From positions 372,001-436,000 of the forward strand of contig JAKIMF020000001.1 of NCBI GenBank assembly GCA_022605425.2: 64,000 nt of DNA, read 5' to 3'. Both the position numbers and the translations under genes were made by a program. Below, in pieces: positions 1-64,000 of the stretch (positions within the stretch are counted from its first letter, which is position 1; every line of letters starts with the position of its first letter). The notes under the pieces are model-generated. The model had not been told where the DNA came from and did no database searches. It saw nothing but the letters and a program-made list of their open reading frames with translations. This stretch comes from Hamiltosporidium tvaerminnensis FI-OER-3-3 (taxonomy: Eukaryota; Fungi; Microsporidia).

Positions 1-133
1 CACTAACACTTTCTAGAAGGTAGCAGTATCTTCACTATACTTATCATTTGGGGCTGACTTCTCTTTGTTAATCTCTAAGCCAATCACCTCTAAAAATTAC
101 TTTGCCTCGTCTGTCATAGCACTCAAGGTAGAA
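1..133 (-). mobile_element. 5' edge of a truncated RLE non-LTR retrotransposon fragment, running off the window start
   Basis: Reverse complement of 16341-16473. It encodes a decayed ...LEVIGLEINKEKSATND..., matching the RT region of the 1250-aa ORF. Confidence 0.85.
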
Positions 134-135
134 GG

Positions 136-375
136 AAAAAATATAAACAACTCAAATTATAAGAATTTAAAAGTTTAGGAAACTTAAGAACAACGATTAG
201 TCTATGAAATAATTGATTAAAAAATGTAAACAACTCAAATAATATGAAAATAAAAGTTTAAGAAACTTAAGAATAACGATTAGTCTATGAAATAATTGAT
301 TAAAAAATATAAAAAATTCAAATTTTAAGAAAATAAAAGTTTAGGAAATTTAAGAATAATAATCAGTCTATGAAT
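136..375. repeat. Tandem repeat, ~83-bp unit x ~3
   Basis: Unit aaaaaatataaacaactcaaattataagaatttaaaagtttaggaaacttaagaacaacgattagtctatgaaataattgatt starts at ~136, ~219 and ~302. Inverted copies lie at ~16100-16338 and ~52305-52545. Confidence 0.85.
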
Positions 376-765
376 AGAATTAATTGGTTTTTAAAAAAAA
401 ATTATAGATATAAATAAGAGAAATGAATTAGAAATATTTTAATTATTTCTTAATTTGGGTTGTTTATATCTATAATAGATTTTTTCGTTTCATGAATTCT
501 AAATTCTAAATTTTAAATTTAGTGTTTTTTTATTGCTGTTTCTTAAAATTTGGAGATTATTATTTAATTGAATTTAGAATTTAGTCCAAGGTTTAATTAT
601 TTCATTTTTATTTCTTGTATTTATTTGATTTGAATAGGCAAAGGTTTTACTTTTATATTTTCTTTAAATATTCATTCGAATCTTTTTTTGTAATTCTATT
701 ATTTTTTTAAAAAATGTGTTATTTTAAATATTTATACGAAGCTAAAACCAAAGACTTTTGGATTT

Positions 766-912
766 TTTTTAAATTTAAAAGAGGTGGAAGAAAATATATA
801 AAAAGGTAAAAAATTTTTAACCTTGAATCTTATAAACGATTTTTAAAGTTAAATGAGGTGGAAGAAAATATATAAAAATGGTAAAAATATTTTAACTCAT
901 AATTTTATTAAA
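766..912 (+). repeat. Two tandem ~75-bp copies of the retrotransposon 3' terminus
   Basis: gaggtggaagaaaatatataaaaa(t)ggtaaaaa(t)attttaac occurs twice and matches the element 3' ends at 5180-5310 and 37050-37110. Inverted copies lie at ~15560-15706 and ~51765-51910. Confidence 0.8.
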
Positions 913-2390
913 TATAAAAAATTATACTTAGATATATACTATTAGATAAGTAAAACAATTTATTCTACTACACCTTCTTCTTTAAATGTATTTTAATTTA
1001 ATTTTAATTCCCTAAAAATTAAAATCTTATATTCCATCCTAATATAATTTTACATTAATTTAATTCATTCTAATAAATTTCTTATAAATTCAATCTTAAT
1101 TTTATTCGATGATTTAATTTTAATCTTATCTAATAAAATGATGCCTGTATGATCGTTTTGGCATTTTATTCGTATACCTTTGGTTCCTAATTTTTATTTA
1201 AAGTTCTAAATACTAACCAAGTAACTTAAAGATCAAAACAATAGAATTAAGTTTTTGTATTAAGAAGATTTTTCTAAATAAATATGATAACAGGTCTAAT
1301 CTTGAATTTTATTCCTAGTTTAAACTATATAAGAATAAATCTTAAACAAAAAAATTTCTTAATTTCATTTATATTAAATTAAAATAATAATTAAATGTAT
1401 AGAATGCTAGTATGAGATATATCTCCTATATAATATTATTCTTAACATCTAATTATGTTTTATTCCCGTATGATACCAAAAAATTCTGTTGCAAAGCTAG
1501 AATGGTTTACTAGTATTTCGCAATATATTTTGCTATTAATTTACTATGTTATCTTTGTTGCCTGATAGACATCGAACGATTGCATTTACATGTGTTTTTA
1601 ATCTATCAAAGATTTTGGCACGTATTGGAGTATAAATATAGCAGATTAAAACAAAATTTTCGGTTTATAAATTATACTATGATTGCTACTTAGTATAACA
1701 GATGTGTTATAGTGAGAAATCCGAAAAAAAATATTTTTTTGATAAAATATTTAAAATTTAATTCTAAAAGTCGGACTTATAATCTCATTCAGTAGCTAAA
1801 AATTTTAAAATATATAAATTCAAATAAAATGTAGGACTTAAATAATCTCATTTGCTTGCTGATAAGGGTAAAAAAATATCTACATACTAAAATAAAATGT
1901 AAAATTCTTTTTTAATTCTATTCTATCAGATATAAAGTACTATTAAGTTAAAATTTTTATTAAATTCCGTCTAATTCGAAAAGATATATAATTTTAGCTA
2001 TTTACAATCACTCTGCCTGAATACACTTTTTTATTTAAAAAAATAATAGTTAAAAGAATAAATGATTTTAAATAATTTGGCTTAAAATTATCTCTTTTCT
2101 TACAAAACGAAAGAACATCTTCAATTGATGATTTAAAATAGTCAAATGTTTAGTATTTTATTTAAAGAATACAATATAAGATATGATAATAAATAGGTAG
2201 ATGAATTTTATTAAAAATTAATTTAATATCTGATGTAATATCATTAAGGAAATTAAAATAAGATTAAAAGATATATTAAAAACCTTTTTTCATTTTGATA
2301 CACTTTGTTTAAGATAAAGAGAATCAATGCAGATTTACAAACAAACATTCGATTTGAAATCTATATAATAAAAAAAACAATAATAAACAA

Positions 2391-3596
2391 ATGATTGGCA
2401 AAATAAAGAACAGCGGAAATATTAAAAAAATTAATATTTCAGAAGTAACAAAAAATCAGGGACTTGAATCGAGTGAACTGATTGGAATCTTAAATAAAAT
2501 CAATGAATGCAAGCAAGATATTAATGATATGGGAAATATACATAAAAGTATATTTAGAATTATTAAAAATTCGAAATTGAAGGAGAAAGAAGAAGAGAGT
2601 ATAAAATCTAAAGAAGATTCAAAAAAAGCAAATTTATCCTTTCTTGAAAATGTAGCAGTAAAAATACATGAAATAAACATTTGGAATCATAAAGATAAGA
2701 GATTCCCGATGTTAAAATATCATATGGAATATAAATTTCCTATAATGATATACAAAAAAAATGAAATTTATTTTAAATCAAAGCTGGTAAATGAACCATC
2801 TCGAGATCAAAAAAAAGAAATTCCATGCAAGAAATTAGAAAAAAAAGAAACAAAAGCTAAAGATACTTTAAAATATGATTCACTTAGTGATATAGAAAAA
2901 ATAAAATTGGCTTGTTTCTGCTTTAAGAAGCTTCGTAAATATAGATCCAGTTTTAAAGATAATATTTTAGAAAGAATTTCAGATATATTCAGATCTTCGT
3001 TTAAGAAAGATTCTTATCATATAAAAAAAGCAAATACATTTGTTTATACCGTTGGTGACCATATTATGGATGTAGGAATCAAAAAAGAGGGATTGTTTAG
3101 AATTTCCGGTAAATATGCCTATTATAAATTTATGCCGGGTGTTTTAGCTGCAGGAAAGAGATATGATTATACTGAGTTATCTGTTCATGACAACGCTTCA
3201 ATTTTCAAAGCATATATTCGGGTGATAATGAATGGGATAATTTCAGTTCAGATTGCAGAAAGGGTGATGAAAATAATAAAAAACCAGACGGATCCTTCAA
3301 TAATAGAATATATTGTGCCTTTAATAATATTTTCGATTACAAATGAAAATAGAAAGATGCTTATCTATTTGCAGAAAATCTTTCGAAAAGTTGATCAGTA
3401 TTCAAAATATAATAAAATGGGGTCAGATAATCTATACAAAATTTTTACTCCCACTATTTTTCCAAATATTGAATGTTATGATTTGCAATCCATAAATTTG
3501 CAAATTGAGATTGTAAAAAGAATTTTTGAGTCAAATTTATCAGAAATCCCTTGTTTTTTGTATGAAGAAGCACTTTCGGCAGCTAATAATCAATAA
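2391..3596 (+). CDS. RhoGAP-domain protein, copy 1 (open, 401 aa)
   Basis: The C-terminal half has RhoGAP motifs: EGLFRISG (arginine finger), HDNASIFKAYIR and NKMGSDNLYKIFTPTIF. The stop codon lies inside AATAAA. Confidence 0.85.
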   Translation: MIGKIKNSGNIKKINISEVTKNQGLESSELIGILNKINECKQDINDMGNIHKSIFRIIKNSKLKEKEEESIKSKEDSKKANLSFLENVAVKIHEINIWNHKDKRFPMLKYHMEYKFPIMIYKKNEIYFKSKLVNEPSRDQKKEIPCKKLEKKETKAKDTLKYDSLSDIEKIKLACFCFKKLRKYRSSFKDNILERISDIFRSSFKKDSYHIKKANTFVYTVGDHIMDVGIKKEGLFRISGKYAYYKFMPGVLAAGKRYDYTELSVHDNASIFKAYIRVIMNGIISVQIAERVMKIIKNQTDPSIIEYIVPLIIFSITNENRKMLIYLQKIFRKVDQYSKYNKMGSDNLYKIFTPTIFPNIECYDLQSINLQIEIVKRIFESNLSEIPCFLYEEALSAANNQ

Positions 3597-3675
3597 ATCC
3601 TTTTTATTTTCGATTTTTATTGTATTAATTTTATTTTTAAAATATATTTGAATATATTTTTAAAATTATTTAAAA

Positions 3676-5320
3676 AAGAAGATAACATAGGAATTCCAAC
3701 ACGTAGCTTATTTGAAGAAGTACGGTGCAAACTTTTATCAAGAATTGAAAGACTTTGTCATACCTGATTAAATGCGAATAATTTATTTTCTGCAATCAAT
3801 CAATCAACATGCGATATCGTTAATCAACTATCACATAGGAGTACTTCGACTTGAACCGGCTGACTTCTCTAAGATAGATGATGCAGTTCGTTCGGTGTTG
3901 GTAAACAATAAGATACATCGTCTTGTAAAGAGCGTTTGTATCTTACTAGAACAGAACTTGGAAGAGGCCTACATAGTGTTGAGTTGCGAAGCGAACATAT
4001 GCTTCTGCAACTCTCGGATTGTCTGGAAAAAAGTAAAGAAATATCAATCAGACGAGCAGCAATCTCAAGGGTGGAAAATAATAATAAAACCCATCTTGCA
4101 CTAATAAAAGGCTTCTTAAAAGTAAATCACAGGTTGGTAGAAGAAGTCACTAAGAAAAGTTTAGAAGAAGCTTAACTTGCAAAACTATACAACGAAATAG
4201 AAAAACGAAAACTTCATTCAAAGTTATATAATGCAAGGAAAAATGAGCTTGTAAGTGTTAGTGACTCTGCAAGATGGTTAAAGAGAGGGAATATTAGGCC
4301 ACGAAACGAAGCTGTGTTTTGCTATATCCAGGATAGAAATTTATTATGGGGATCAGATGGTATGTGCCAACACTGTGGGAAGTCTGGTAAGACTGTAGAT
4401 CATCTAGCAACTCGATGTGAAAAAGTGCTAGGTCATGACTACACCAGACGGCATAATGAAGTGGTTAGATGCCTACACCTACTTCTTCTAAATAGATATA
4501 AGTTTAAGTCTTCGAAACGAATTAGAAGCCACTCAGTTCAAGAAATTCCTGATAACGAATATGCAGAGATAAGAGTGGACACCAGAATAAAAAAGGAAGT
4601 CAAGATTCGGTGTATCAGACCAGATATATTTATTTTAGACAAGAGACAGAATAGGATAACCCTCATTGAAGTAGGAATCACATCCCAAGACTCTCTTCAA
4701 ATAGTTGAAACAGAGAAGCTTAGGAAGTATGACCTGTTAGCAAATGAGTTAGGTCTTATTTATAAATGCAGTGTAGAGATAATTCCTTATGTGATGACCT
4801 GGGATGGTATTGTGACAAAATACCATAAGACGTATGTTAAGAGACTGCAAATACCCATGAATGTAGAAGCATACATTCAGTCTATAGTACTTAAGAAGAC
4901 TGTTGAAACAATTTCCTTTGATCGACGAAGAGGACTTGGTCAAGACTAAATGCCGAAGAGAGCTGGGAGGAGCGTCAATGGGTGTTATTATGAGAGCAAA
5001 GATGCATGAGGAATTAAAACCTTATTTAAAAGAAGAGAAGAGAGAGGAAGATGGTGCAAAAAAATTTAAACCAAAAAATAAAGCACCCTTTATTCCACAA
5101 GGAAGAACCACTTTAGAGGAACCGACCAATAACATAAATAAAGAGTCGGATATCGAAGAAGAGACAAAATGGTTGAAGAGGTGGAAGAAAACATATAAAA
5201 ATCGTAAAAATATTTTAACTCACAATATTATAAACGATTTTTAAAGTTAAAAGAGGTGGAAGAAAATATATAAAAATGGTAAAAATATTCTAACTCATAA
5301 TTTTATATACGATTTTTAAA
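3676..5320 (+). mobile_element. 5'-truncated, decayed RLE non-LTR retrotransposon fragment (R1) with a duplicated 3' tail
   Basis: Fragmented ORFs are homologous to the C-terminal ~40% of the 20793-24545 protein (CQHC..HLATRC, RHNEV, RPDIFI..LIEVG). Frameshifts and a premature stop (EEA*) are present. Confidence 0.92.
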
Positions 5321-5324
5321 CTTA

Positions 5325-6240
5325 AATTTTTTTTTTATTTTTTGAATAACCTTCCATCATTTTAAATATTTAATTTTCTTCTTCTAAATTTTATTCTTGT
5401 TTTTTGTTTATAAAAAGAGGTAAGATAAGCACATTAAAAACCATCTGCTTGGTAATGATTATTTGAAGTTGTTGTGAAATTTATTGTTGCCATTTTGGTA
5501 GGATATAAACTACACCGGATCTATAGTTCAATTCTCTATAATACCGAGTAATAACAGATTAAAAGGAATAATTAGGTAAGTTTATTTTGTTCGAATCTCT
5601 GATATTGGCATCTTAATTCAAAATAAGGATTGGATTTTTTTTTGTTTTTACTTGTTTAAAGTCACAATACTCAATGGAGTAGACTTTAAAAGGGTATTGT
5701 TTCCTTGGGATCTCTCTTCCTTGTAAAATACTTAGGGTACTTTCTTTCAAATCTCTTTGCCATTTGGTCCTGACTCGAATTCTCTTGATTATTGAAAAGA
5801 AATTGTTTCGACTGCCTTTTTGTGTATTGTTGATTACATGCGTGTTTCTAATTCTATGAGTATTTAGAATCTTCAGGATATATCTTATGATATTTTGTCA
5901 CTGTATAATCCGAAACTAAGAAATAACAAATTTTTTTCTAATAATTTTATAAACAGAATAAAACACACAGAAGTAATTTGTATGTCTTAAGTTTGTTGGT
6001 CTACATTCTTTGAAGCGAATCTTGTTCGTGTTTACACCCTAGATAAGTGTAATCATATTTAATTTCTTTTACATCATGAATATATCTTGTCTATTTTGAT
6101 AATATTGTAATAAGCTTTATATCTCAGTTCTAGTTTTATTTCCGATAATTATTTTCAGAAATTTCTTGAACTGTGTGATATTTAATTTTTTTTTGATTTA
6201 TATGTTTAGATATTTGTTAAGTATAAATATTGGCATCCAA
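5325..6240 (-). mobile_element. Old, highly diverged relic of the same retrotransposon family, tail-to-tail with R1
   Basis: The minus strand retains gtgacaaaatatcataag, cagtcgaaacaatttc, gagtcaggaccaaatg and cacacagttcaagaaattt, all matching the RLE and C-terminal region. Repeated at ~41528-42430 and ~59270-60176. Confidence 0.7.
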
Positions 6241-9200
6241 AACTTCATTATCGGTTTTATTAATTGTATTATATTATAAATTTATAAGAAATAAGAAGGA
6301 AAATTTTTTATTCTACGTTGAAATTCGGTTGTTGTTTGTTCGAAAAGAAGCAATTTTTAAAATTTTTAGACTTAATTTCTCCATTATTCCATTCTGTTTT
6401 TACCTCTTAGTGTCGAATATGAACAAATGAAAGTTTTCCATTTGTTTTTTTTGTCTAATGTAACTCGGGATTACAGGGAATTGGCCTATAGATCAGGCGT
6501 GTTTTATATCCCACCTCAATGGAAGCAATGATTTTCACACAAATTTTATACACACATTTCCAAGCAGATAGTTTTTAATGAGATTATTCTTTCTCCACTT
6601 ATACATCTTTTTTTTAAAGAAAAAATATTTTTTATATACAAAATTCATAAGTTTTTTTTATTTTCTACATAACTTTGCGTTTAACTTCATTATTTTTCTT
6701 ATTTATTTGGTTTTGTACGAAGGATTGAGGCGATGATGTACTATTGAAAGTTATAAATATAATTATCAGAATGAAATAATGCACATCTTGGTTATCATTT
6801 CAGTAAAAATGTAAATTTTAACTAAATTAAAAACTTAAAGTTAATAAAAGAACAAATTTCTTAAAAATAAAGAAAAAAAAATTTCAGAGGCTGTTACCGA
6901 TTTAAAATTTTGAAAGAAACATGCACTTTTTGATGCACTTCCCACGCAATCAAAAAGGAATGAAGGCATGTATGAACACCTTTAAACTCGCATTATCGAA
7001 TTTAAAAGAAAAAGAAAAAATACATTTTAAATTTTTTCACTTGCAAAAAATATGAATTATTAAGTCGTTTTGTGAATAATTCACATATTTTAAGATATTC
7101 CTAAACTATAGTACAATTGGATTGATTTGATCAAAGAAATATGGAAATGAAAATGACAGATATGAATAGTTTCTAAATTTTTCAATTTGTTTTAAAGTTT
7201 CTTTTTTTATTTGTATTGAAAATTGAAACAGTGAAAACATTATATCCACTCTAAAGCAATTATTCAACCATAAAAATGCTCCTAGATTTTAAAAAGCGAT
7301 AAATATCACGAATTTTATTTTCTTATATTACAGAATTTCTATGTTTGCATTATATCAAGTTTGTAAATAAAAGTCTGAAACATCCTGGAAATCCTGGACA
7401 GGTTGCCTTAATTAGTAAATAGTCGTAAGAACAATCGCAAAAGAATTATCTTGTCGAAAAGAAACAGATGAGAAATTTCTAATAATGTATATTTTAATAT
7501 AAACATTATGAAGACGACTAGTAATTATGTTACCTATGCAGGCATTGATTTTTCGCGGTATATGGATATTTCATTGTAGTCAATTTCAATAATATTAATG
7601 AAGAAGTATTTAAAATACTAGAAAAGGAATCAGTTATATAATTAATTCAAAATTAATACAGAATATACATTATTCAAGAGATAATAGTATAGAGCCGTAT
7701 ATCACTCTTTTTGGTCTACAAGAATTTATATGAAGAACCAAAAGGCTTAGGTTTTGAGAATATTGAAAATGCGGAGCTTCGTAAAATTGTCTATAATTTA
7801 ATCCAGAAAAAGATGTATATATTCTACAATTCTTCAATGTAAACTATAGGCACAAAGAAACAAAATAAATTGCTTTATATAGAAGAAGCTGGATTATTTA
7901 AAAGAGAATTAATTCGACACTTTTAAATTCTTTATCGAAGAGCTCTAGGAATACAAAATTTATATCTGAAGACAGAACAAAGAATCTATTTAATCAAATA
8001 ATATTATTCCCGTTGTTTTTAAATTGCGTTTATTTTTTTGTATTTTTTATCATAAATTTTATTGTCTTAATGTAATTTTTGTAAATGATATACAAAATAT
8101 TCCTTATATGATAAATTCAAAATAAAAGTACGGTAACAGATATATCCGCCCAAGAGTAATATTATTTATTTAATAATAAATAAAAGACAGGTATTTTGGT
8201 TTATCTTATAATATAAAAAAAAATGAATTTATCTGATCTATTTTTTAATTTCAAAAAAATGGGTTGAACTGTTAATTTTAACTCCGTATAATTATTTCCA
8301 AATCCTTGAAAGAATTTTTTAAATAGCTTTTATTAAAGCTATATTTATATTTTGTTTAAAACAACTCAAACACACACATATTCATTGCAATTTTAAGTTA
8401 CTATAATTAAGAAAATCTTTCAAATATGTTGTTTTAAATAAAGAATGATTTGGTATAAAAAAAACCATAGCTCTTAACTAAGTCAATATACAAATAAAAT
8501 CGAATTTTCAAATTATTACATATAAATTGAATATTTTCACACAACTTACTTCTGGAAAACCTACGAATAATGATTTTAGTACTATGACAAATGTAAATAA
8601 TTTATTTGATAATAATTGACGGTCTTCAGTACTAACAAAATACTAGGAAAAAAATGCGTAGTTTTAGTTCCAAATGCTTTTACATGCATCTTGGGTCTAT
8701 AACTAGCCATTTCCTTTTTACAATATTATAAAAGAAAAATATTGTAAAAAAACTGATGGTATTGTGGTTTAAAAATTTATTTTACCTTTTTGGTAAAATA
8801 AATATTAAATTAGATTTGTAGAAATCAAAAATATAAAAATTAAATTATATTTTATTAATAAGTTTTTTATGATGATTACCGATTCCATTCCGATTTATTT
8901 ATTCCTAGAATTATTACGTTCCAACATTTTCTTCGTTATTACATTCGACGCTTTATTTTCGAATTTTGCACACAAAAAAATTCAAATGGTTTTTGAATCT
9001 TTTTTTACTTAACGAAACATATATATCTTCTCAGGTACGTCAGTATAATGAGATATGGCTTTGATCTATGTCTCCTCTCGATTACAAAGAATAAGTACGA
9101 ACTTTTGTAATCTATCTGAATTCTATCTTTATACTCCTTTTATTCTTCTATCAAAGCAAAAATTGACTATCTCTTAAACTAATATTGGCTGTTCACAGTG

Positions 9201-11227
9201 TCCTATTTTTGATTCGGATGCAAAACTTAATATTGTATACATATTATGATGTCTAGAAACAAATAATGAACAAATACTCTGTAATGATGTCAAACTCTGT
9301 GCTAATATACAAGAAATACTTTACTTATAACAAAAATAAAGTTAAATTTATTCTTTCGCATGTCCATTTTGAAGCAAAAAAAATAGTTCTGAAATAAATC
9401 TTTCTCTATAATTTCTATTCAATACAGAACCATAAGTAAATTTTTTCTTGATATTTGATATCTTTTATCTAAATTTATTTTTAGTTTCGCTTTTTTTGGC
9501 GAACTTTTGAACTGAATAGCTCATATGACGTTTAAATTCTTTGATCATTTGTATTTATAAGCATTAGATGCGCAGAAAAACAAATTTTATTTCTTAATTT
9601 GGATCTTCTTTACGTAGTTAAGATCGCGACGCAAAATTTCTGCCGTTTTTAAGTTTTTTCGTTCTCAAAAAGGCATTCTATTTAAATAATAACAAAATTC
9701 TAGTATATTTAACATCAAGGTTTCTTAATCAGCTTTTTGTAAGTGTTATTAACACCTATTATCATTTACTTCTAGGATATAAAGCTTGATTTATTTTCGA
9801 TTTTCTATCCAGCTAGATATTTTTTTATGAATTTTTTAATCTTCATCTCTTTATCTCTCTTTCTATTTTTAATTTTACACAGAAATAGTTTATTATTATT
9901 GCAAGATTGCTCCAAATCGTTTCATTTCTTAGAATTTATTTATTTTTTTTACAGAGAACCACGGAATTGCAAAATCACATATATATTCAAATTAAACATT
10001 CTGAAAGATTTCTTAAGGTTTTATTTTGACAGAAACGATTTATCGGAACCTCGAGTTCTATTTGTATAGTGTTCATAACTAGAACACAAAATAATTTATC
10101 ATCTTTGTAGATCAATTAACCGTTTGGGTTCAAAGTACTCTAAAAGAAAAATGAATAATATTTACCTAAAATTTGATTGGTAAAATAAATTTGATACATT
10201 CAACTATGTATCATTAAACGTTTAAATCTTTACTTTAAGTGTCCTTTTAATAGCTTTAGATTAATTTTTCTTGGTTTTACTTTGAGACATTCAATTTATT
10301 CAAAATGTTTGTAACCACCAACAAACTCTAATATTGTTTCGATACCTCGATAATCATTTCTTTTCTGTTTTATTTAGCTTTGGGATGAATAAAATATGTT
10401 GATGATAATTATTTATTTCAGTTTCCGTGAGACCGAAAAATATTCATCATTTTAAGAGGCACTTTTAATGCTATAAAAATTTGTAATTTTCTTTTTAAAG
10501 TTCTAAGTTTATTTTAGTTTTTCTTTATTGATTAATTTTTCTCAGGAATGAAAACAGTATACAAATATAGTATTGGTTTGCCATGTGATATAGGTATTTA
10601 CTAATGTCTCTTGTGACAAATAGATTGTTTTTTTGGCGTAAATATTTGTAATTTAAAGGTAACAGTGTAAAAATCGGTATTCAAACCCGAAATCTTTCCA
10701 ATTAATTTGTGTTATGCCGGCTACTAGAAGATTAGTATGCTTTTAGAGGAAACAAAATTTTTAATTTTCAAAAATATAATAATATTTTGAAATAGCCTTA
10801 ATATAAATTTATAATTAGCAGACAGCACACACTATTTTTCAAATTAGAAATACCTTATTAATCATTAAACCTAGATATTCTGACAAAACAAAAACTTTTA
10901 TGATGTTTAAGAACTCATTTTGTCTGGTAACATCCAAATTTTGCTTAAATCGACAAATAAATTATTTAAAATCGTCTTCAAACCAAAAAAATAGTTTTCT
11001 TTGTGAAAATATACCCTTTTGAGATTTTTTAATTCGTTCTTTGTCTCTAATATACTCAAAATAGCGTATATTAGATTTAACTCCAACACATCACGTATTA
11101 TACAAAATTCTGATATATTAATTTCTTTAACTTATATTTTGGAGGTTTTCTATTGTGATTATTCAATATATCATACATTAATATCAAAATATTCTTTTTT
11201 ATATTTTTAGAAAGATATCATATGAGT
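5325..11227 (+). repeat. Spacer cassette S, copy 1 (~5.9 kb, no intact gene)
   Basis: Near-identical to 41528-47432 (direct) and 54276-60176 (inverted). Confidence 0.92.
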
Positions 11228-12798
11228 TTTATTTAATAAAATTCTGGGTTAAAATATTTTTACCATTTGTCACATGTTTTCTTCTACCTCCTTAACCACT
11301 TCTGTCTCTTCTTCCAAATTCGACTCTTCATTTATGTTATTGGTCGGTTCCTCTAAAGTGGTTCCTCCTTGTGAAATAAAGGGTGCTTTATTTTTTAGTT
11401 TAAAATTTTTTAAACCATCTTCCTCTCTCTTCTCTTCTTTTAAATAAGGTTTTAATTCCTCATGCATCTCTGATCTCATAATAACACCCATTGACGCTCT
11501 CTCCCAGCTCTCTTCGGCATTTAGTCTTGACTCAAGTCCTCTTCGTCGATCAAAGGAAATTGTTTCGACTGTTTTCTTAAGTACTATAGACTGAATGTAT
11601 GCCTCACAATTCATGTGTATTTCTAGTCTTTTAAGATGATATTTATGGTATTTTGTCACAATACCGTCCCAGGTCATCACATAAGGGATTATCTCTTAAC
11701 TACATTTGTAAATAAGACCAAGCTCATTGGCTAGAAAGTCATACTTCCTAAGTTTTTCAGTTTCAACTATTTTAAGTCAATCTTGGGAAGTGATTCCTAC
11801 TTCAATGAGTGTTATCTTATTCTTCTTCTTATCTAAAATAAATATGTCGGGTCTGTTATTCCGAATTTTAACATCAGTTTTAATTCTGGTGTCCACTCTT
11901 ATCTCTGCATACTCATTATCAAGAATTTCTTGAACTGAGTGGCTCCTTATTCGTTTTGAAGACTTAAACTTATATCTATTTAGAAGAAGTAGGTGTAGGC
12001 ATCTAACCAATTCATTATGCCGTTCTGTGTAGTCATGACCTAGCATTTTTTCACATCGAGTTGCTAGATGATCTACCGTCTTACCAAATTTATTACAGTG
12101 TTGGCACATACCATCTGATCCCCATAATAAATTTCTATCCTGGATATAGCAAAACACAGCTTCGTTTCGTGGCCTATTATTTCCTCTTTTTAACCATCTT
12201 GAAGAGTCACTAAGACTTACAAGCTCATTTTTCCTTGCATTATATAACTTTGAATGAAGTTTTCGTTTTACTATTTCGTTATATAGTTTTGCAAGTTAAG
12301 CTTCTTCTAAACTTTTCTTAGTGACTTCTTCTACCAACCTGTACTTTACTTTTAAAAAGCCTTTTATTAGTGCAAGATGGGTTTTATTATTATTTTCCAC
12401 CCTTGAGATTGCTGCTCGTCTGATTGATATTTCTTAACTTTTTTCAAGAACATCCAAGAGTTGCAGAAGCATATGTTCGCTTTGCAACCCAAAACTATTT
12501 AGGTCTCTTCCAAGTTCTGTTCGTGTAAGATACAAACGCTCTTTACATCCTGGGCGAAGATGTATCTTATTCTTCACCAACACCGAACGAACTGCATCAT
12601 CTATCTTAGAGAAGTCAGCCGGTTCAAGTCGAAGTACTCCTATGTGATAGTTGATTAACGATATCGCATGTTGATTGATTGCAGAAAATAAATTTTTAAA
12701 GTTTAATCAGGTATGACAAAGTCTTTCAACTCTTGATAAGAGTTTGCTCTGTACCTCTTCAAATGAGCTACGTGTTGGGATTCCTTTGCTATCTTCAA
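11228..12798 (-). mobile_element. 5'-truncated, decayed RLE retrotransposon fragment (R2)
   Basis: Contains ORF pieces 11270-11680 and 11777-12157. The 3' end reads ttaacccagaattttattaaataaa. Confidence 0.92.
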
Positions 12799-18270: not shown

Positions 18271-18275
18271 TTAGA

Positions 18276-41523: not shown

Positions 41524-41527
41524 CTTA

Positions 41528-52547: not shown

Positions 52548-54275
52548 TTCTACCTTGAGTGCTATGACAGACGAGGCAAAGGAATTTTTAGAGGGGATTG
52601 GCTTAGAGATTAACAAAGAGAAGTCAGCCACAAATGATAAGTATAGTGAAGATACTGCTACCTTCTAGAAAGTGTTAGTGTTTTTAAATATTTAGGAATT
52701 ATAGAAGATAGCAGAAGAATTCCAACACGTAGCTCATTTGAAGAAGTACAAAGCAAACTGATAGCAAGAATTGAAAGACTTTCTCACACAAGATTAAATG
52801 CAAAAAATTTATTTTCTGCAATCAATCAATCAACATGCGATATCGTTAATCAACTATCACATAGGAGTACTTCGACTTGAACCGGCTGACTTCTCTAAGA
52901 TAGATGATGCAGTTCGTTCGGTGTTGGTGAAGAATAAGATACATCTCCGCCTAGGATGTAAAGAGCGTTTGTATCTTACACGAACAGAACTTGGAAGAGA
53001 CCTAAATAGTTTTGGGTTGCAAAGCGAACATATGCTTCTGCAGTTCTTGGATTGTCTTGAAAAAAGTAAAGAAATATCAATCAGACGAGCAGCAATCTCA
53101 AGGGTGGAAAATAAAAATAAAACCCATCTTGCACTAATAAAAGGCTTTTTAAAAGTAAAGTACAGGTTGGTAGAAGAAGTCACTAAGAAAAGTTTAGAAG
53201 AAGCTTAACTTGCAAAACTATATAACGAAATAGAAAAACGAAAACTTCATTCAAAGTTATATAATGCAAGGAAAAACTAGCTTGTAAGTCTTAGTGACTC
53301 TTCAAGATGGTTAAAAAGAGGAAATAATAGGCCACGAAACGAAGCTGTGTTTTGCTATATCCAGGATAGAAATTTATTATGGGGATCAGATGGTATGTGC
53401 CAACACTGTAATAAATTTGGTAAGACGGTAGATCATCTAGCAACTCGATGTGAAAAAATGCTAGGTCATGACTACACAGAACGGCATAATGAATTGGTTA
53501 GATGCCTACACCTACTTCTTCTGAATAGATATAAGTTTAAGTCTTCAAAACGAATAAGGAGCCACTCAGTTCAAGAAATTCTTGATAATGAGTATGCAGA
53601 GATAAGAGTGGACACCAGAATTAAAACTGATGTTAAAATTCGGAATAACAGACCCGACATATTTATTTTAGATAAGAAGAAGAATAAGATAACACTCATT
53701 GAAGTAGGAATCACTTCTCAAGATTCACTTCAAATAGTTGAAACTGAAAAACTTAGGAAGTATGACTTTCTAGCCAATGAGCTGGGTCTTATTTACAAAT
53801 GTAGTTAAGAGATAATCCCTTATGTGATGACCTGGGACGGTATTGTGACAAAATACCATAAATATCATCTTAAAAGACTAGAAATACACATGAATTGTGA
53901 GGCATACATTCAGTCTATAGTACTTAAGAAAACAGTCGAAACAATTTCCTTTGATCGACGAAGAGGACTTGAGTCAAGACTAAATGCCGAAGAGAGCTGG
54001 GAGAGAGCGTCAATGGGTGTTATTATGAGATCAGAGATGCATGAGGAATTAAAACCTTATTTAAAAGAAGAGAAGAGAGAGGAAGATGGTTTAAAAAATT
54101 TTAAACTAAAAAATAAAGCACCCTTTATTTCACAAGGAGGAACCACTTTAGAGGAACCGACCAATAACATAAATGAAGAGTCGAATTTGGAAGAAGAGAC
54201 AGAAGTGGTTAAGGAGGTAGAAGAAAACATTTGACAAATGGTAAAAATATTTTAACCCAGAATTTTATTAAATAA
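52548..54275 (+). mobile_element. 5'-truncated RLE retrotransposon fragment, chimeric (R3-type 5' junction, R2-type 3' junction)
   Basis: The 5' flank equals that of 16341. The 3' end and flank (…aataaaactcatatgatatc) equal the reverse complement of 11215-11270. Confidence 0.9.
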
Positions 54276-57200
54276 AACTCATATGATATCTTTCTAAAAA
54301 TATAAAAAAGAATATTTTGATATTAATGTATGATATATTGAATAATCACAATAGAAAACCTCCAAAATATAAGTTAAAGAAATTAATATATCAGAATTTT
54401 GTATAATACGTGATGTGTTGGAGTTAAATCTAATATACGCTATTTTGAGTATATTAGAGACAAAGAACGAATTAAAAAATCTCAAAAGGGTATATTTTCA
54501 CAAAGAAAACTATTTTTTTGGTTTGAATACGATTTTAAATAATTTATTTGTCGATTTAAGCAAAATTTGGATGTTACCAGACAAAATGAGTTCTTAAACA
54601 TCATAAAAGTTTTTGTTTTGTCAGAATATCTAGGTTTAATGATTAATAAGGTATTTCTAATTTGAAAAATAGTGTGTGCTGTTTGCTAATTATAAATTTA
54701 TATTAAGGCTATTTCAAAATATTATTATATTTTTGAAAATTAAAAATTATGTTTACTCTAAAAGGATACTAATCTTATAGTAGCCGGCATAACACAAATT
54801 AATTGGAAAGATTCGGGGTTTGAATACCGATTTTTACACTGTTACCTTTAAATTACAAATATTTACGCCAAAAAAACAATCTATTTGTCACAAGAGACAT
54901 TAGTAAATACCTATATCACATGGCAAACCAATACTATATTTGTATACTGTTTTCATTCCTGAGAAAAATTAATCAATAAAGAAAAACTAAAATAAACTTA
55001 GAACTTTAAAAAGAAAATTACAAATTTTTATAGCATTAAAAGTGCCTCTAAAAATGATGAATATTTTTTGGTCTCACGGAAACTGAAATAAATAATGCTC
55101 ATCAACATATTTTATTCATCTGTAGAGCTAAATAAAACAGAAAAGAAATGATTATCGAGGTATCGAAACGATTTTAGAGTTTGTTGGTGGTTACAAACAT
55201 TTTGAATAAATTGAATGTCTCAAAGTAAAACCGAGAGAAATTAATCTAAAGCTATTAAAAGGACACTTAAAGTAAAGATTTAAACGTTTAATGATACATA
55301 GTTGAATGTATCAAATTTATTTTACCAATCAAATTTTAGGTAAATATTATTCATTTTTCTTATAGAGTATTTGTAGCCAAACATTTAATTGATCTAGATA
55401 TATGATAAATTATTTTGTGTTCTAGTTATGAACACTATACAAATAGGACTCGAGGTTCCGATAAATCGTTTCTGTCAAAATAAAACCTTAAGAAATCTTT
55501 CAGAATGTTTAATTTGAATATATATGTGATTTTGCAATTCCGTGGTTCTCTGTAAAAAAAATAAATAAATTCTAAGAAATGAAACGATTTGGAGCAATCT
55601 TGCAACAATAATAAACTATTTCTGTGTAAAATTAAAAATAGAAAGAGAGATAAAGAGATGAAACTAAAAAATTCTAAAAAAAAATATCTAGCGGAGTAGA
55701 AAATCGAAAATAAATCAAGCTTTATATCCTAGAAGTAAATGATAATAGGTGTTAATAACACTTACAAAAAGCTGATTAAGAAACCTTGATGTTAAATATA
55801 CTAGAATTTTGTTATTATTTAAATAGAATGCCTTTTTGAGAACGAAAAAACTTAAAAACGGCAGAAATTTTGCGTCGCGATCTTAACTACGTAAAGAAGA
55901 TCCAAATTAAGAAATAAAATTTGTTTTTCTGCGCATCTAATGCTTATAAATACAAATGATCAAAGAATTTAAACGTCATATGAGCTATTCAGTTCAAAAG
56001 TTCGCCAAAAAAAGCGAAACTAAAAATAAATTTAGATAAAAGATATCAAATATCAAGTTAAAATTTACTTATGGTTCTGTATTGAATAGAAATTATAGAG
56101 AAAGATCTATTTCAGAAATATTTTTTTTGCTTCAAACTGGACATGCGATAGAATAAATTTAACTTTATTTTTGTTATAAGTAAAGTATTTCTTGTATATT
56201 AGAACAGAGTTTGACACCATTACAGAGTATTTGTTCATTATTTGTTTCTAGACATCATAATATGTATACAATATTAAGTTTTGCATCCGAATCAAAAATA
56301 GGACATGTGAACAGCCAATATTAGTTTAAGAGATAGTCAATTTTTGCTTTGATAGAAGAATAAAAGGAGTATAAAGATAGAATTCAGATAGATTACAAAA
56401 GTTCGTACTTATTCTTTGTAATCGAGAGGAAACATAGATCAAAGCCATATCTTATTATACTGACGTACCTGAGAAGATATATATGTTTCGTTAAGTAAAA
56501 AAAAATTCAAAAAACATTTGAACTCTTTTTGTGTGCAAAATTCGAAAATAAAGCGTCGAATTGAATAACGAAGAAAATGTTGGAACGTAATAATTCTAGG
56601 AATAAATAAATCGGAATGGAATCGGTAATCATCATAAAAAAACTTATTAATAAAATATAATTTAATTTTTATATTTTTGATTTCTACAAATCTAATTTAA
56701 TATTTATTTTTCCAAAAAGGTATAATAAATTTTTAAACCACAATACAATCAGTTTTTTTACAATATTTTTCTTTTATAATATTGTAAAAAGGAAATGGCT
56801 AGTTATAGACCCAAGATGCATCTAAAAGCATTTGGAACTAAAACTACGCATTTTTTTCCTACTATTTTGTTGGTACTGAAGACCGTCAACTATTATCAAA
56901 TAAATTATTTACATTTGTCATAGTACTAAAATCATTATTCGTAGGTTTTCCAGAAGTAAGTTGTGTGAAAATATTCAATTTATATGTAATAATTTGAAAA
57001 TTCGATTTTATTTGTATATTGACTTAGTTAAGAGCTATGGATTTTTTTATACCAAATCATTCTTTATTTAAAACAACATATTTGAAAGATTTTCTTAATT
57101 ATAGTAACTTAAAATTGCAATGAATATGTGTGTGTTTGAGTTGTTTTAAACAAAATATAAATATAGCTTTAATAAAAGCTATTTAAAAAATTCTTTCAAG

Positions 57201-60176
57201 GATTTGGAAATAATTATACGGAGTTAAAATTAACAGTTCAACCCATTTTTTTGAAATTAAAAAATAGATCAGATAAATTCATTTTTTTTATATTATAAGA
57301 TAAACCAAAATACCTGTCTTTTATTTATTATTAAATAAATAACATTACTCTTGGGCGCATATATCTGTTACCGTACTTTTATTTTGAATTTATCATATAA
57401 GGAATATTTTGTCCATCATTTACAAAAATTAGATTAAGACAATAAAATATATGATAAAAAATACAAAAAAATTAACGCAATTTAAAAACAACGGGAATAA
57501 TATTATTTGATTAAATAGATTCTTTGTTCTGTCTTCAGATATAAATTTTGTATTCCTAGAGCTCTTCAATAAAGAATTTAAAAGTGTCGAATTAATTCTC
57601 TTTTAAATAATCCAGCTTCTTCTATATAAAGCAATTTATTTTGTTTCTTTGTGCCTATAGTTTACATTGAAGAATTGTAGAATATATACATCTTTTTCTG
57701 GATTAAACTATATACAATTTTACGAAGCTCCGCATTTTCAATATTCTCAAAACCTAAGCCTTTTGGTTCTTCATATAAATTCTTGTAGACCAAAAAGAGT
57801 GATATACGGCTCTATACTATTATCTCTTGAATAATGTATATTCTGTATTAATTTTGAATTAAATTATATAACTGATTCTTTTTCTAGTATTTTAAATATT
57901 TCTTCATTAATATTATTGAAATTGACTACAATGAAATATCCATATACCTCGAAAAATCAATGCCTGCATAGGTAACATAATTACTAGTCGTCTTCATAAT
58001 GTTTATATTAAAATATACATTATTAGAAATTTCTCATCTGTTTCTTTTCGACAAGATAATTCTTTTGCGATTGTTCTTACAACTATTTACTAATTAAGGC
58101 AACCTGTCCAGGATTTCCAGGATGTTTCAGACTTTTATTTACAAACTTGATATAATGCAAACATAGAAATTCTGTAATATAAGAAAATAAAATTCGTGAT
58201 ATTTATCGCTTTTTAAAATCTAGGAGCATTTTTATGGTTGAATAATTGCTTTAGAGTGGATATAATGTTTTCACTGTTTCAATTTTCAATACAAATAAAA
58301 AAAGAAACTTTAAAACAAATTGAAAAATTTAGAAACTATTCATATCTGTCATTTTCATTTCCATATTTCTTTGATCAAATCAATCCAATTGTACTATAGT
58401 TTAGGAATATCTTAAAATATGTGAATTATTCACAAAACGACTTAATAATTCATATTTTTTGCAAGTGAAAAAATTTAAAATATATTTTTTCTTTTTCTTT
58501 TAAATTCGATAATGCGAGTTTAAAGGTGTTCATACATGCCTTCATTCCTTTTTGATTGCGTGGGAAGTGTATCAAAAAGTGCATGTTTCTTTATAAAATT
58601 TTAATCCGGTAACAGCCTCTGTAATATTTTTTTCTTTATTTTTAAGAAATTTTTACTTTTGTTAATTTTAAGTTTTTAATTTAGTTAAAATTTACATTTT
58701 TACTGAAATGATAACCAAGATGTGCATTATTTCATTCTGATAATTTTATTTATAACTTTCAATAGTACATTATCGCCTCAATCCTTCTCACAAAACCATA
58801 TAAATAAGAAAAATAATGAAGTTATACGCAAAGTTCTTAAAAATAAAAAAAAACTTATGAATTTTGTATATAAAAAATATTTTTTCTTTAAAAAAAAGAT
58901 GTATAAGTGGAGAAAGAATAATCTCATTTTAAACTATCGCTTGGAAATGTGTGTATAAAATTTGTGTGAAAATCATTGCTTCCATTGAGGTGGGATATAA
59001 AACACCCCTGATCTATAGGCCAATTCCCTGTAATCCCGAGTTACAATAGACAAAAAAAACAAATGGAAAACTTTCATTTGTTCATATTCGACGCCAAGAG
59101 GTAAAAACAGAATGGAATAATTGAGTAAGTAAGTCTAAAAATTTTCAAAATTGCTTCTTTTCGAACAAACAACACTCGAATTTCTACGTAGAATAAAAAT
59201 TTTTCCTTCTTATTTCTTATAAATTTATAAATAATACAATTAATAAAACCGATAATGAAGTTTTGGATGCCAATATTTATACTTAACAAGTATCTAAACA
59301 TTCAAATCCAAAAAAAGATTAAATATCACACAGTTCAAGAACTTTCTGAAAATAATGATCAGAAATAAAACTAGAACTGAGGTATAAAGCTTATTACAAT
59401 ATTTTCAAAATAGACAAGATATATTCATGATGTAAAAGAAATTAAATATGATTACACTTATCTAGGGTGTAAACACGAACAAGATTCGCTTCAAAGAATG
59501 TAGACCAACAAACTTTAGACATACAAATTACTTCTGTGTGTTTTATTCTGTTTATAAAATTATTAGAAAAAAATTTGTTATTTCTTAGTTTCGGATTATA
59601 CATGACAAAATACCATAAGATATATCATGAAAATTCTAAATACTCATAGAATTAGAAACACGCATGTAATCAACAATACACAAAAAGGCAGTCGAAACAA
59701 TTTCTTTTCAATAACCAAGAGAATTCGAGTCAGGACCAAATGGCAAAGAGATTTGAAAGAAAGTACCATAAGTATTTTACAAGGAAGAGAGATCCCAAGG
59801 AAACAATACGCTTTTTAAGCTTAGCTCCATTGGGTATTGTGACTTTAAACAATAAAAAACAAAAAAAAATCCACTCCTTATTTTGAATTAAGATGCCAAT
59901 ATCAGAGATTCGAACAAAATAAAACTTACCTAATTATTCCTTTTAATCTGTTATAACTCGGTATTATAGAGAATTGAACTATAGATACAGTGTGGTTTAT
60001 ATCCTACCAAAATGGCAACAATGAATTTCACAACAACTTATGATCATTACCAAGCAGATGGTTTTTAATGTGCATATCCTACCTCTTTTTATAAACAAAA
60101 AACAAGAATAAAATTTAGAAGAAGAAAATTAAATATTTAAAATGATGGAAGGTTATTCAAAAAATAAAAAAAAATT
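54276..60176 (-). repeat. Spacer cassette S, copy 3 (inverted)
   Basis: Reverse complement of 41528-47432. Confidence 0.92.
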
Positions 60177-60179
60177 TAA

Positions 60180-61829
60180 GTTTAAAAATCGTATATAAAA
60201 TTATGAGTTAAAATATTTTTACCATTTTTTATATTTTCTTCACCTCTTTTAACTTTAAAAATCGTTTATAATATTGTGAGTTAAAATATTTTTACGATTT
60301 TTATATGTTTTCTTCCACTTCTTCAACCATTTTGTCTCTTCTTCGATATCCGACTCTTTATTTATGTTATTGGTCGGTTCCTCTAAAGTGGTTCTTCCTT
60401 GTGGAATAAAGGGTGCTTTATTTTTTGGTTTAAATTTTTTTGCACCATCTTCCTCTCTCTTCTCTTCTTTTAAATAAGGTTTTAATTCCTCATGCATCTT
60501 TGCTCTCATAATAACACATATTGACGCTCTCTCCCAGCTCTCTTCGGCATTTAGTCCTGACTCAAGTCCTCTTCGTCGATTAAAGGAAATTGTTTTGACT
60601 GTCTTCTTAAGCTCTATAGACTGAATGTATGCCTCTACATTCATGTGTATTTCTAGTCTTTTAAGATGAGATTTATGGTATTTTGTTACAATACCGTCCC
60701 AGGTCATCACATAAGGGATTATCTCTTAACTACATTTGTAAATAAGACCCAGCTTATTGGCTAGAAAGTCATACTTCCTAAGTTTTTCAGTTTCAACTAT
60801 TTTAAGTAAATCTTGGGAAGTGATTCCCAATTCAATGAGTATTATCTTATTCTTCTTCTTATCTAAAATAAATATGTCGGGTCTGTTATTCCGAATTTAC
60901 ACATCAGTTTAAATTCTGGTGTCCACTCTTATCTCTGCATACTCATTATCAAGAATTTCTTGAACTGAGTGACTCCTTATTCGTTTTGAAGACTTAAACT
61001 TATATCTATTTAGAAGAAGTAGGTGTCTGCATCAAACCACTTCATTATGCCGTCTGGTGTAGTCATGACCTAGCATTTTTTCACATCGAGTTGCTAGATG
61101 ATCTACAGTCTTACCAAATTAATTACAGTGTTGACACATACCATCTGATCCCCAGAATACATTTCTATCCTGGATATAGCAGAACACAGCTTCATTTCGT
61201 GGCCTAATATTTCCTCTCTTTAGCTATCTTGGAGAGTCACTAACACTCACAAGCTCATTTTTTCTTGCATTATATAACTTTGAATGAAGTTTTCGTTTTT
61301 CTATTTCGTTATATAGTTTTGCAAGTTAAGCTTCTTCTAAACTTTTCTTAGTGACTTCTTCTACGAACCTGTACTTTACTTTTTAGAAGCCTTTTATGAG
61401 TGAGAGATTGGTTTTATTATTATTCTCCACTTTAAGGATTTCTGCTCGTCTAGTTGAATTTTCTTTACTTTTTTCAAGAACATCCAAGAGTTGCAGAATC
61501 CATTGTTCGCTTCGCAACTCAACACTATTTAGGTCTCTTCCAAGTTCTGTTGTAAGAAGATACAAACGCTCTTTACATCCTAGGCGGAGATGTATCTTAT
61601 TCTTCACCAACACCGAACGAACTGCATCATCTATCTTAGAGAAGTCAGCCGGTTCAAGTCGAAGTACTCCTATGTGATAGTTGATTAACGATATCGCATG
61701 TTGATTGATTGCAGAAAATAAATTTTTAAAGTTTAATCAGGTATGACAAAGTCTTTCAATTCTTGATAAAAGTTCGCTTTGTAATTCTTCAAATGAGCTA
61801 CGTGTTGGGATTCCTCTGCTATCTTCTAT
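60180..61829 (-). mobile_element. 5'-truncated RLE retrotransposon fragment (R1'') with a duplicated 3' tail
   Basis: ORF pieces at 60255-60710 and 61383-61613. Confidence 0.92.
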
Positions 61830-61906
61830 TTTAAATAATTTTAAAAATATATTCAAATATAGTTAAAAAATAAAATTAAAACAATAAAAATCGAAAATAA
61901 AAGGAT

Positions 61907-63113
61907 TTATTGATTATTAGCTGCCGAAAGTGCTTCTTCATACAAAAAACAAGGGATTTCTGATAAATTTGACTCAAAAATTCTTTTTACAATCTCAATT
62001 TGCAAATTTATGGATTGCAAATCATAACATTCAATATTTGGAAAAATAGTGGGAGTAAAAATTTTGTATAGATTATCTGACCCCATTTTATTATATTTTG
62101 AATACTGATCAACTTTTCGAAAGATTTTCTGTAAATAGATAAGCATCTTTCTATTTTCATTTGTAATCGAAAATATAATTAAAGGCACAATATATTCTAT
62201 TATTGAAGGATCCGTCTGGTTTTTTATTATTTTCATCACCCTTTCTGCAATCTGAACTGAAATTATCCCATTCATTATCTCCCGAATATATGCTTTGAAA
62301 ATTGAAGCGTTGTCATGAACTGATAACTCAGTATAATCATATCTCTTTCCTGCAGCTAAAACACCCGGCATAAATTTATAATAGGCATATTTACCAGAAA
62401 TTCTAAACAATCCCTCTTTTTTGATCCCTTCATCTAAAATATGGTCACCAACGGTATAAACAAATGTATTTCTTTTTTTATATGATAAGAATCTTTCTTA
62501 AACGAAGATCTGAATATATCTGAAATTCTTTCTAAAATATTATCTTTAAAACTGGATCTATATTTACGAAGCTTCTTAAAGCAAAAACAAGCCAATTTTA
62601 TTTTTTCTATATGGCTAAGTGAAATCATATTTTATAGTTTCATTTAGCTTTTGTTTCTCTTTTTTCTAATTTCTTGCATGGAATTTCTTTTTTTTGATCT
62701 CGAGATGGTTCATTTACCAGCTTTGATTTAAAATAAATTTCATTTATTTTGTATATCATTATAGGAAATTTATATTCCATATGATATTTTAACATCGGGA
62801 ATCTCTTATCTTTATGATTCCAAATGTTTATTTCATGTATTTTTACTGCTACATTTTCAAGAAAGTATAAATTTGCTTTTTTTGAATCTTCTTTAGATTT
62901 TATACTCTCTTCTTCTTTCTCCTTCAATTTCGAATTTTTAATGATCCTAAATATACTTTTATGTATATTTCCCATATCATTAATATCTTGCTTGCATTCA
63001 TTGATTTTATTTAAGATTCTAATCAGTTCACTCGATTCCAGTCCCTGATTTTTTGTTACTTCTGAAATATTAATTTTTTTAATATTTCCGCTGTTCTTTA
63101 TTTTGCCAATCAT
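61907..63113 (-). pseudogene. RhoGAP-domain gene, copy 5, frameshifted
   Basis: ORF pieces at 62640-63113, 62434-62628 and 61907-62410. Confidence 0.8.
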
Positions 63114-64000
63114 TTGTTTATTATTGTTTTTTTTATTATATAGATTTCAAATCGAATGTTTGTTTGTAAATCTGCATTGATTCTCTTTATCTTAAACAAA
63201 GTGTATCAAAATGAAAAAAAGGTTATTAATATATCTTTTAATCTTATTTTAATTTCCTTAATGATATTACATCAGATATTAAATTAATTTTTAATAAAAT
63301 TCATCTACCTATTTATTATCATATCTTATATTGTTAACTAAAGATAAAATACTAAACAATTGACTATTTTAAATCATCAATTGAAGATGTTCTTATGTTT
63401 TGTAAGGAAAGAGATTTATTTATCTAAATTATTTTAAAATCTTTTATTCTTTTATCTATTATTTTTTTAAATTAAAAAGTGTATTCGAGATGAGTGATTG
63501 TAAATACCTAAAATTATATATCTTTTCGAATTAGATGGAATTTAATAAAAATTTTAACTTAATAGTACTTTATATCTGATAGAATAGAATTAAAAAAGAA
63601 TTTTACATTTTATTTTAGTATGTAGATATTTTTTACCCTTATCAGCAAGCAAATGGGATTATTTAAGTCCTACATTTTATTTGAATTTATATATTTTAAA
63701 ATTTTTAGCTACTGAATGAGATTATAAGTCCGACTTTTAGAATTAAATTTTAAATATTTTATCAAAAAAATATTTTTTTTCGGATTTCTTAATATTACAA
63801 ATCTGTTATATTAAGTCGCAATCATAGTATAATTTATAAACCGAAAATTTTGTTTTAATCTGCTATATTTATACTCCAATACGTGCCAAAATCTTTGATA
63901 GATTAAAAACACATGTAAATGCAATCGTTTGATGTCTATCAGGCAACAAAGATAACATAGTAAATATATAGCAAAATATATTGCGAAATACTAGTAAACC

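Follow-up and report, generated by a model that had tools for sequence, protein, structure and literature searches.

Cassettes in both orientations between inverted retrotransposon fragments: a tandem RhoGAP array in the genome of Hamiltosporidium tvaerminnensis

Background

How do neighbouring blocks of a genome come to lie in both orientations between inverted copies of one repeat, and does such an arrangement act as a DNA switch? These questions are raised by a stretch of 64,000 nucleotides (the window) from Hamiltosporidium tvaerminnensis FI-OER-3-3, a microsporidian that parasitizes Daphnia (contig JAKIMF020000001.1, here C12, positions 372,001-436,000), in which a cassette containing a RhoGAP gene (A) and a spacer (S) alternate with fragments of a retroelement (R). 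An original prediction, made by a model from the sequence of the window, divided the cassette into the gene (G) and its upstream DNA (X), together called XG, and proposed a shufflon-like array in which dead retroelement ends serve as recombination hinges that flip and amplify the RhoGAP cassette. Literature searches brought to light no previous account of the array, nor of any long interspersed nuclear element (LINE) that carries a RhoGAP gene in microsporidia.

The map of the locus was built from self-BLAST of the window and from reference pieces mapped onto C12:352,001-486,000 (134 kb); genome-wide results refer to the 17-contig, 21.64-Mb assembly of H. tvaerminnensis. This assembly was made from Oxford Nanopore Technologies (ONT) reads (N50 32.7 kb), merged with an assembly of Pacific Biosciences continuous long reads (PacBio CLR) and polished with Illumina short reads, and its authors reported that large tandem repeats hindered assembly (PMC10542269).

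Results and discussion

Organization of the array

The window is part of a tandem array of approximately 111 kb (C12:364,424-475,715) that extends past it on both sides, and in which a 12.8-kb unit, composed of an inverted R, the RhoGAP cassette A, R and the spacer S, is present about eight times. With plus and minus signs for the orientations of the cassettes, and r and r' for opposite orientations of R, the left part of the array reads S- r' A+ r S+ r' A- r, followed by approximately 17 kb of unique DNA with genes, and the right part reads R5 A+ r S+ r' A- r S- r' A- r S- r' A- r S- r' A+ r S- r' A-. The inventory comprises eight A, seven S, fourteen short R (1.58 kb) and one long R, and the spacing of R alternates between about 7.58 and 5.24 kb from C12:370,419 to 472,275, giving the 12.8-kb period. 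Both A and S are found in each orientation within the array, the copies of A being 97.2-99.9% identical to one another and those of S 97.6-99.5%, far above chance. Inverted 1.58-kb R bracket six of the seven S and six of the eight A, leaving out the copies at the edges (S0 and A8) and the truncated third A copy (A3), which is preceded by a direct 3.8-kb R instead of an inverted one. The array is internal to a 2.68-Mb contig, with housekeeping genes on either side: that for dihydrouridine synthase on the left, and those for coatomer beta and TFIIF beta on the right.

The block order that had been claimed for the window was reproduced exactly, by self-BLAST as well as by mapping of the reference pieces. 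Within the window, S always sits between converging R and complete A between diverging R, and both cassette types occur in both orientations, just as the original prediction had it; the identity of G as RhoGAP also holds (Pfam E values of approximately 1e-20 to 1e-22). The observation of flipped cassettes between inverted R is real, and the structure is larger than had been described.

Exchange within the retroelement fragments

At its 5' end each R joins A, at either the G end or the X end of the cassette, and at its 3' end it joins S, at either S-start or S-end; every junction type is identical base for base across its copies. All four combinations exist (G/S-start in five R, G/S-end in three, X/S-end in three and X/S-start in two), a junction-level four-gamete result that requires exchange within R. 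The interiors of R are patchworks of a small number of haplotypes. Internal variants show an r2 of 0.43 with the 5' junction type over the first 200 bp, falling to at most 0.08 farther in; for the 3' junction type, r2 is 0.68 over the last 200 bp and does not exceed 0.17 in the remainder, and variants in the middle 1.2 kb are linked to neither type. Because linkage to the junctions is lost outside the terminal 200 bp, the exchange points are scattered along R, which argues for homologous rather than site-specific recombination.

The Hudson-Kaplan minimum number of recombination events is 30 in R (1.58 kb), 21 in A and 26 in S. The whole unit is pervaded by gene conversion or unequal exchange, most densely in R. 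Inverted R pairs on the two sides of a single cassette are 90-95.5% identical overall; in several of them, uninterrupted identity nevertheless extends over 200-561 bp, with maxima of 533, 528 and 561 bp in pairs that differ by 5-8% overall. Cassettes in opposite orientation can be each other's closest relatives (A2- and A7+, 99.3% identical; S2+ and S6-, 99.5% identical), and orientation is not monophyletic in the tree of array A copies. On the strength of the four junction combinations, the lost linkage and these oppositely oriented nearest relatives, the earlier proposal that R is where DNA was exchanged is borne out.

The parent retrotransposon of R

The R fragments of the array begin at approximately residue 740 (G-side) or 698 (X-side) of the open reading frame (ORF) of an intact relative, the X-side R being 126 bp longer than the G-side R. 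They have no reverse transcriptase (RT) domain and their reading frames are broken, so that the description of R as dead 3' halves is apt for the array; it does not extend to every retroelement at the locus, since the unique DNA between the two parts of the array contains an intact RT ORF of 1250 amino acids (aa). This ORF has an RT domain (Pfam, 7.7e-28; Protein Data Bank matches to L1 ORF2p and to the R2 retroelement), a CCHC knuckle at residues 971-988 and an RPD...E..K restriction-like endonuclease (RLE) motif near residue 1055, and no apurinic/apyrimidinic endonuclease (APE) domain was found in it. By the combination of RT, CCHC knuckle and RPD...E..K motif with no APE domain, the R family is an RLE-type retrotransposon without long terminal repeats (non-LTR). 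It is abundant, with 1,289 candidates in a first genome-wide look. A second intact ORF of the family (1260 aa) is present in the left flank at C12:358563-362345 on the minus strand. Both of these ORFs, which lie beside the array, may supply RT in trans to the composite element described below.

A 73-bp tandem duplication of the R 3' end (41381-41529) is present at every junction of R with S-start and absent from the junctions with S-end. The R tail at S-start is unlike the usual ...AACCCAGAATTTTAT end of the family.

A composite LINE with RhoGAP as internal cargo

The 3.53-kb cassette A contains a RhoGAP ORF of 401 aa in which the arginine-finger motif (GLFRISG) is present. Positions 722-3530 of A, together with a 1.57-kb 3' half of R, were found at no fewer than 13 further loci (92-94% identity), the dispersed copies being distributed over contigs C1, C3, C4, C5, C6, C12, C14 and C15. 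An upstream R in the same orientation precedes A at most of these loci, giving the layout R (from position 135, 508, 2230, 2427, 2965 or 3290 to the end), A (722-3530) and R (2343-3912). The internal junctions of the composite are identical at all loci and its 3' end is constant, and the 5' truncation of the upstream R is variable. Target-site duplications were sought at eight composite copies, of which only the C6 copy has a convincing one (12 bp, CTTATTATAACT, around the composite), the others being ambiguous in AT-rich flanks. The same layout stands beside housekeeping genes in an independent short-read assembly of H. tvaerminnensis. In a maximum-likelihood tree the dispersed A copies radiate like a star, and all eight from the array fall into one clade (support 100/100).

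From the fixed junctions and 3' end, the variable 5' truncation, the target-site duplication on C6 and the star-like tree, A with its downstream R is evidently a composite RLE-type LINE with RhoGAP as internal cargo, apparently retrotransposed as a unit. The R on the G side of each cassette is accordingly the built-in 3' end of the composite and not an independent dead insertion. The notion that recombination hinges amplify the RhoGAP cassette gives way to a different account, in which the cassette spread genome-wide by retrotransposition and multiplied within the array by tandem duplication of the 12.8-kb unit.

There are approximately 24 RhoGAP copies genome-wide (six-frame search, all 48 candidates scored). 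The gene is intact in five of the eight array copies and in nine of the 13 full-length dispersed copies, 14 in total. The ratio of nonsynonymous to synonymous substitution rates (dN/dS) among intact copies is 0.22-0.42, and the RhoGAP copies thus appear to be under purifying selection in a comparison that covers intact copies only.

A 64-bp remnant of the R 3' end (848-911 in the window, A positions 722-785) follows the leftmost 720 bp of A (X-left) in every cassette that bears X-left, and in the C5 and C14 copies, too, X-left is flanked by two R 3' ends. It may be a short non-autonomous element ending in an R tail. At the X end of every A copy that has it, X-left contains an 83-bp tandem repeat of 2.9 copies (for example, 52307-52545); the edge copy A8 has one 83-bp unit fewer, with a hybrid repeat.

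Three other loci with relatives of A were observed. At C4:910668-930785 there is an 8.2-kb head-to-tail tandem of the composite (R, A, a 3.4-kb R and an R 3' half) with two A copies, all elements in direct orientation and both RhoGAP ORFs intact; its use as a control in which no inverted R and no flips occur together was rejected, the tandem being too small with only two A copies. At C14:364751-374707 an intact composite is followed by a degenerate A (78-87% identity) and pieces of X-left, which looks like an older local duplication of the composite element. In Hamiltosporidium magnivora, positions 1993-2992 of contig PITI01001120.1 are 90% identical to A 1986-2990, a match of 1 kb that covers the 5' half of RhoGAP and 280 bp upstream, with no recognizable R or other part of A around it. 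This stretch could be a fragment, or a hint of the source gene of the cargo.

Inversion and the RhoGAP gene

Cassette A encloses the complete RhoGAP ORF along with 2.2 kb of upstream DNA, in which no ORF of at least 50 aa was found. As the gene flips together with this upstream DNA, inversion alters no coding joint. The gene is broken in three of the eight array copies, and at nine dispersed loci the RhoGAP cassette is intact without any invertible context. No recombinase or transposase domain was detected by Pfam in any sizeable ORF of the window or of the flanks on either side, in agreement with the earlier statement that no dedicated recombinase is visible in the window and extending it to the flanks; the domains that were found there are RhoGAP, RT, 2-oxoglutarate (2OG) oxygenase, LRR, Dus, ankyrin, coatomer beta and TFIIF beta. 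Short specific crossover sites were not found at the cassette boundaries, which are 1.58-kb LINE fragments with scattered exchange points.

Origin of the array

The rightmost cassette, A8, includes 18 bp more of the 5' sequence of the composite than the other units do, and in dispersed copies these 18 bp sit after the 3' end of the upstream R. A8 borders on unique DNA, at a distance of 83 bp from the coatomer-beta ORF; the corresponding cassette end of every other unit runs, through one invariant junction, into an inverted R at its 5'-truncated end. The additional 18 bp and the contact with the coatomer-beta gene are as expected for the founder insertion. The array copies all descend from one insertion, since array A forms a single clade with 100/100 support nested among star-like dispersed copies.

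A composite RhoGAP-carrying RLE-type LINE would have inserted beside the unique sequence S, with a second R in opposite orientation, and the founder locus, consisting of the composite fragment, S and the inverted R, would then have been duplicated in tandem as the 12.8-kb unit. With two inverted R per unit, each A and each S would be bracketed by inverted homologies of 1.6 kb. Crossover between inverted R, or template switching between them during repair or replication, could then have inverted single cassettes repeatedly, gene conversion without crossover could have shuffled the interiors of R, and unequal exchange between direct units could have altered the copy number and partly homogenized A and S. 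Cellular homologous recombination would be the route of exchange, events would have followed the order given here, and flipping would be rare at present.

The locus is, in all, probably a tandem segmental array whose cassettes were flipped by ordinary homologous recombination between inverted R. Several points weigh against this reading. Gene conversion blurs the relationships among the copies, and the exact sequence of duplications and inversions is not reconstructable from the identities, the tree and the R mosaic. Clean reciprocal chimeras, as expected from a single crossover, are seen at no single cassette. The long identical runs shared by inverted R lie partly in a low-diversity zone of R, and P values calculated for them under uniform placement are overstated. 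Short-read polishing in repeats could have created or blurred some of the mosaic blocks. The arrangement is known from one assembly only, in which static and still-flipping structures look alike; in the other assembly of H. tvaerminnensis, the contigs with RhoGAP relatives that were examined held dispersed copies only and no array sequence.

Alternative explanations

The alternative that survives best, although it is unlikely as a full account, is that the inverted units were born during amplification by template switching between inverted R, of the duplication-inverted triplication-duplication (DUP-TRP/INV-DUP) or break-induced-replication type, and not by later inversion. Blocks of the form A+ R S R' A- are seen three times, an 11.3-kb inverted duplication (37701-49004 versus 64000-52701, 97.4% identity) is present in the window, and chimeric R such as R8 are equally expected on this account; a lone A7+ within a run of A-, with A- copies as its nearest relatives, however, is more simply explained by one local inversion. 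Template switching and cassette inversion rely on the same homology between R copies and do not exclude each other.

Somewhat more doubtful is an ongoing flip-flop, in which recombination between inverted R would be frequent today and clonal populations would be mixtures of orientation isomers with no dedicated recombinase involved, comparable to the isomers known from plastid inverted repeats and herpesvirus segments. The architecture allows a flip at every cassette, identical tracts of at least 500 bp between inverted neighbours imply very recent exchange, and cassettes that are nearest relatives differ in orientation at 0.5-0.7% divergence. Yet the flanking R pairs are merely 90-95.5% identical overall, the units retain private differences of 1-3%, and the assembler resolved a single arrangement. 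In yeast and mammals, such sequence divergence strongly lowers mitotic recombination. Little credence is given to a still bolder combination, a living flip-flop without a recombinase that generates isomer mixtures in clonal lineages while riding on a LINE that amplifies a captured functional RhoGAP.

There is a similarly small chance that the copy number, the order or some of the orientations are wrong, as an artefact of long-read assembly, merging or polishing. The ONT assembly was merged with one of short PacBio CLR with manual curation, and tandem repeats hindered it (PMC10542269); the 66-kb sub-array is also longer than a typical read. Against this, each A-R-S neighbourhood (approximately 9-11 kb) is well within ONT reads of the stated N50, the units have consistent private variants and a strict 12.8-kb period, each of five recombinant-type R junctions is set in unit-specific sequence, and the ends of the array are anchored between housekeeping genes inside a much longer contig.

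Programmed, shufflon-like multiple inversion that varies or regulates RhoGAP expression, the view taken in the original prediction, is very improbable: its likeness to the locus is a formal one, several invertible segments each bounded by inverted repeats, and it is contradicted by the lack of a recombinase in the window and flanks, by exchange points spread over 1.6 kb with no short site, by a cassette whose inversion changes no coding joint and has no coding or regulatory effect, by the non-coding nature of S, by the pseudogenes among the array copies and by the intact cassettes at loci that cannot flip. The flips, having no visible functional readout, look like a by-product of the repeat architecture and not like a programmed switch.

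Features of the window

The coordinates of all features of the window are given in Table 1. The spacer S (6.0 kb) is present in seven copies in the array and nowhere else in the genome, and no ORF longer than 87 aa, no Pfam match and no Rfam match was found in it. Rfam had no match anywhere in the window, and the small ORFs in S and in the unique interval had none in Pfam. Each S includes a small repeat of approximately 230 bp (42551-42828, S positions 1112-1389), part of which recurs in inverted orientation at approximately 41609-41795; this repeat occurs on nearly every contig, with 74-81% identity and in both orientations, and may be an element similar to miniature inverted-repeat transposable elements (MITE-like) or to short interspersed nuclear elements (SINE-like). 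The possibility that S is a centromere-like repeat was ruled out, S being confined to one locus among apparently functional genes.

Table 1. Blocks of the RhoGAP array and other features of the 64,000-nucleotide window, with junction types of R given as 5'/3'
Feature	Positions in window	Strand	Remarks
Inverted X-side R, 5' tip	1-126	-	Remainder upstream of window, C12:370419-372000
Cassette A1	127-3656	+	X-left 127-847 with 83-bp repeats; intact 401-aa RhoGAP ORF 2391-3596
R1, 1.58 kb, without RT domain	3657-5234	+	Junction type G/S-start
Spacer S1, non-coding, array-only, with ~230-bp dispersed small repeat	5235-11231	+	
R2	11232-12817	-	Junction type G/S-end (recombinant type)
Cassette A2	12818-16347	-	Intact RhoGAP ORF 12877-14082
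R3, X-side, 126-bp 5' extension	16348-18054	+	3' end meets unique DNA (edge of sub-array 1)
Unique DNA between sub-arrays	18055-33334		
2OG-Fe(II) oxygenase gene (TPA1 in the original prediction), single-copy, in unique interval	18538-19458	+	
Divergent R-family copy, ~80% identical to array R	20757-24546	-	Intact 1250-aa ORF 20793-24545
R5, degenerate 3.8-kb R, direct orientation	33335-37111	+	With A3 and R6, canonical composite layout
Cassette A3, without X-left	37112-39856	+	RhoGAP frameshifted, 38591-39797
R6	39857-41439	+	Junction type G/S-start; 73-bp duplication of 3' end spans junction with S
Spacer S2	41440-47436	+	
R7	47437-49022	-	Junction type G/S-end
Cassette A4	49023-52554	-	RhoGAP broken, 49083-50288
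R8	52555-54272	+	Junction type X/S-end; 5' part R3-like, 3' part R2/R7-like
Spacer S3, inverted relative to S2 in the same R framework	54273-60264	-	
R9	60265-61847	-	Junction type G/S-start
Cassette A5	61848-64000	-	Continues beyond window to C12:437376; RhoGAP broken, 61907-63113

Comparison with known systems

The array resembles the inversions that arise by non-allelic homologous recombination (NAHR) between inverted segmental duplications or transposon copies, such as human inversion polymorphisms, Y-chromosome palindromes with spacers and Ty-mediated inversions in yeast: long inverted repeats bracket the inverted segment, the breakpoints fall within the repeats, the repeats are chimeric with gene conversion from arm to arm, and no dedicated enzyme is involved. 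In contrast to those cases, the inverted repeats of H. tvaerminnensis alternate through a tandem array, so that both kinds of cassette are invertible throughout, the arms are dead LINE fragments of 90-95% identity, and the host is an asexual microsporidian. In DUP-TRP/INV-DUP rearrangements (human MECP2 and PLP1), too, inverted low-copy repeats are the substrates of template switching or recombination, and inverted duplicated blocks have chimeric repeats at their joints, but these are single events in patients, whereas the present locus is an array of multiple units in which events recurred and gene conversion followed. The shufflon of IncI plasmids (Rci recombinase, sfx sites and C-terminal segments of pilV) likewise has adjacent segments in either orientation between inverted repeats; it differs in its recombinase, its short sites and its alternative coding joints, none of which is found here, where the repeats are 1.6 kb long and divergent, the exchange points are dispersed and the host is a eukaryote.

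The dispersed composites are comparable to 3' transduction by L1 and to the duplication of AMAC1 by SVA, in that a cellular gene was copied to new loci with retroelement sequence; the 5' truncation varies from copy to copy, the 3' end is fixed, and the C6 copy has a clear target-site duplication. Unlike in those systems, the cargo is internal, with a full R on one side and an additional R 3' half on the other; the composite terminates with the 3' end of the element itself and was re-mobilized at least 13 times; and the element is of RLE type, not of L1 type, with many cargo copies intact and dN/dS below 1.

Conclusions

No new kind of programmed DNA switch is revealed by this locus. It is instead a clean natural example of transposon fragments shaping a large microsporidian genome, in which alternating dead LINE ends make each block of a tandem array invertible by the recombination of the cell itself. 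For the remark of the assembly's authors on tandem repeats, it supplies an example taken apart in detail, along with a list of junctions for checking by long reads. The most interesting element of the locus is the composite LINE that carries RhoGAP, by which a gene family has apparently been expanded through a retrotransposon bearing the gene as internal cargo.

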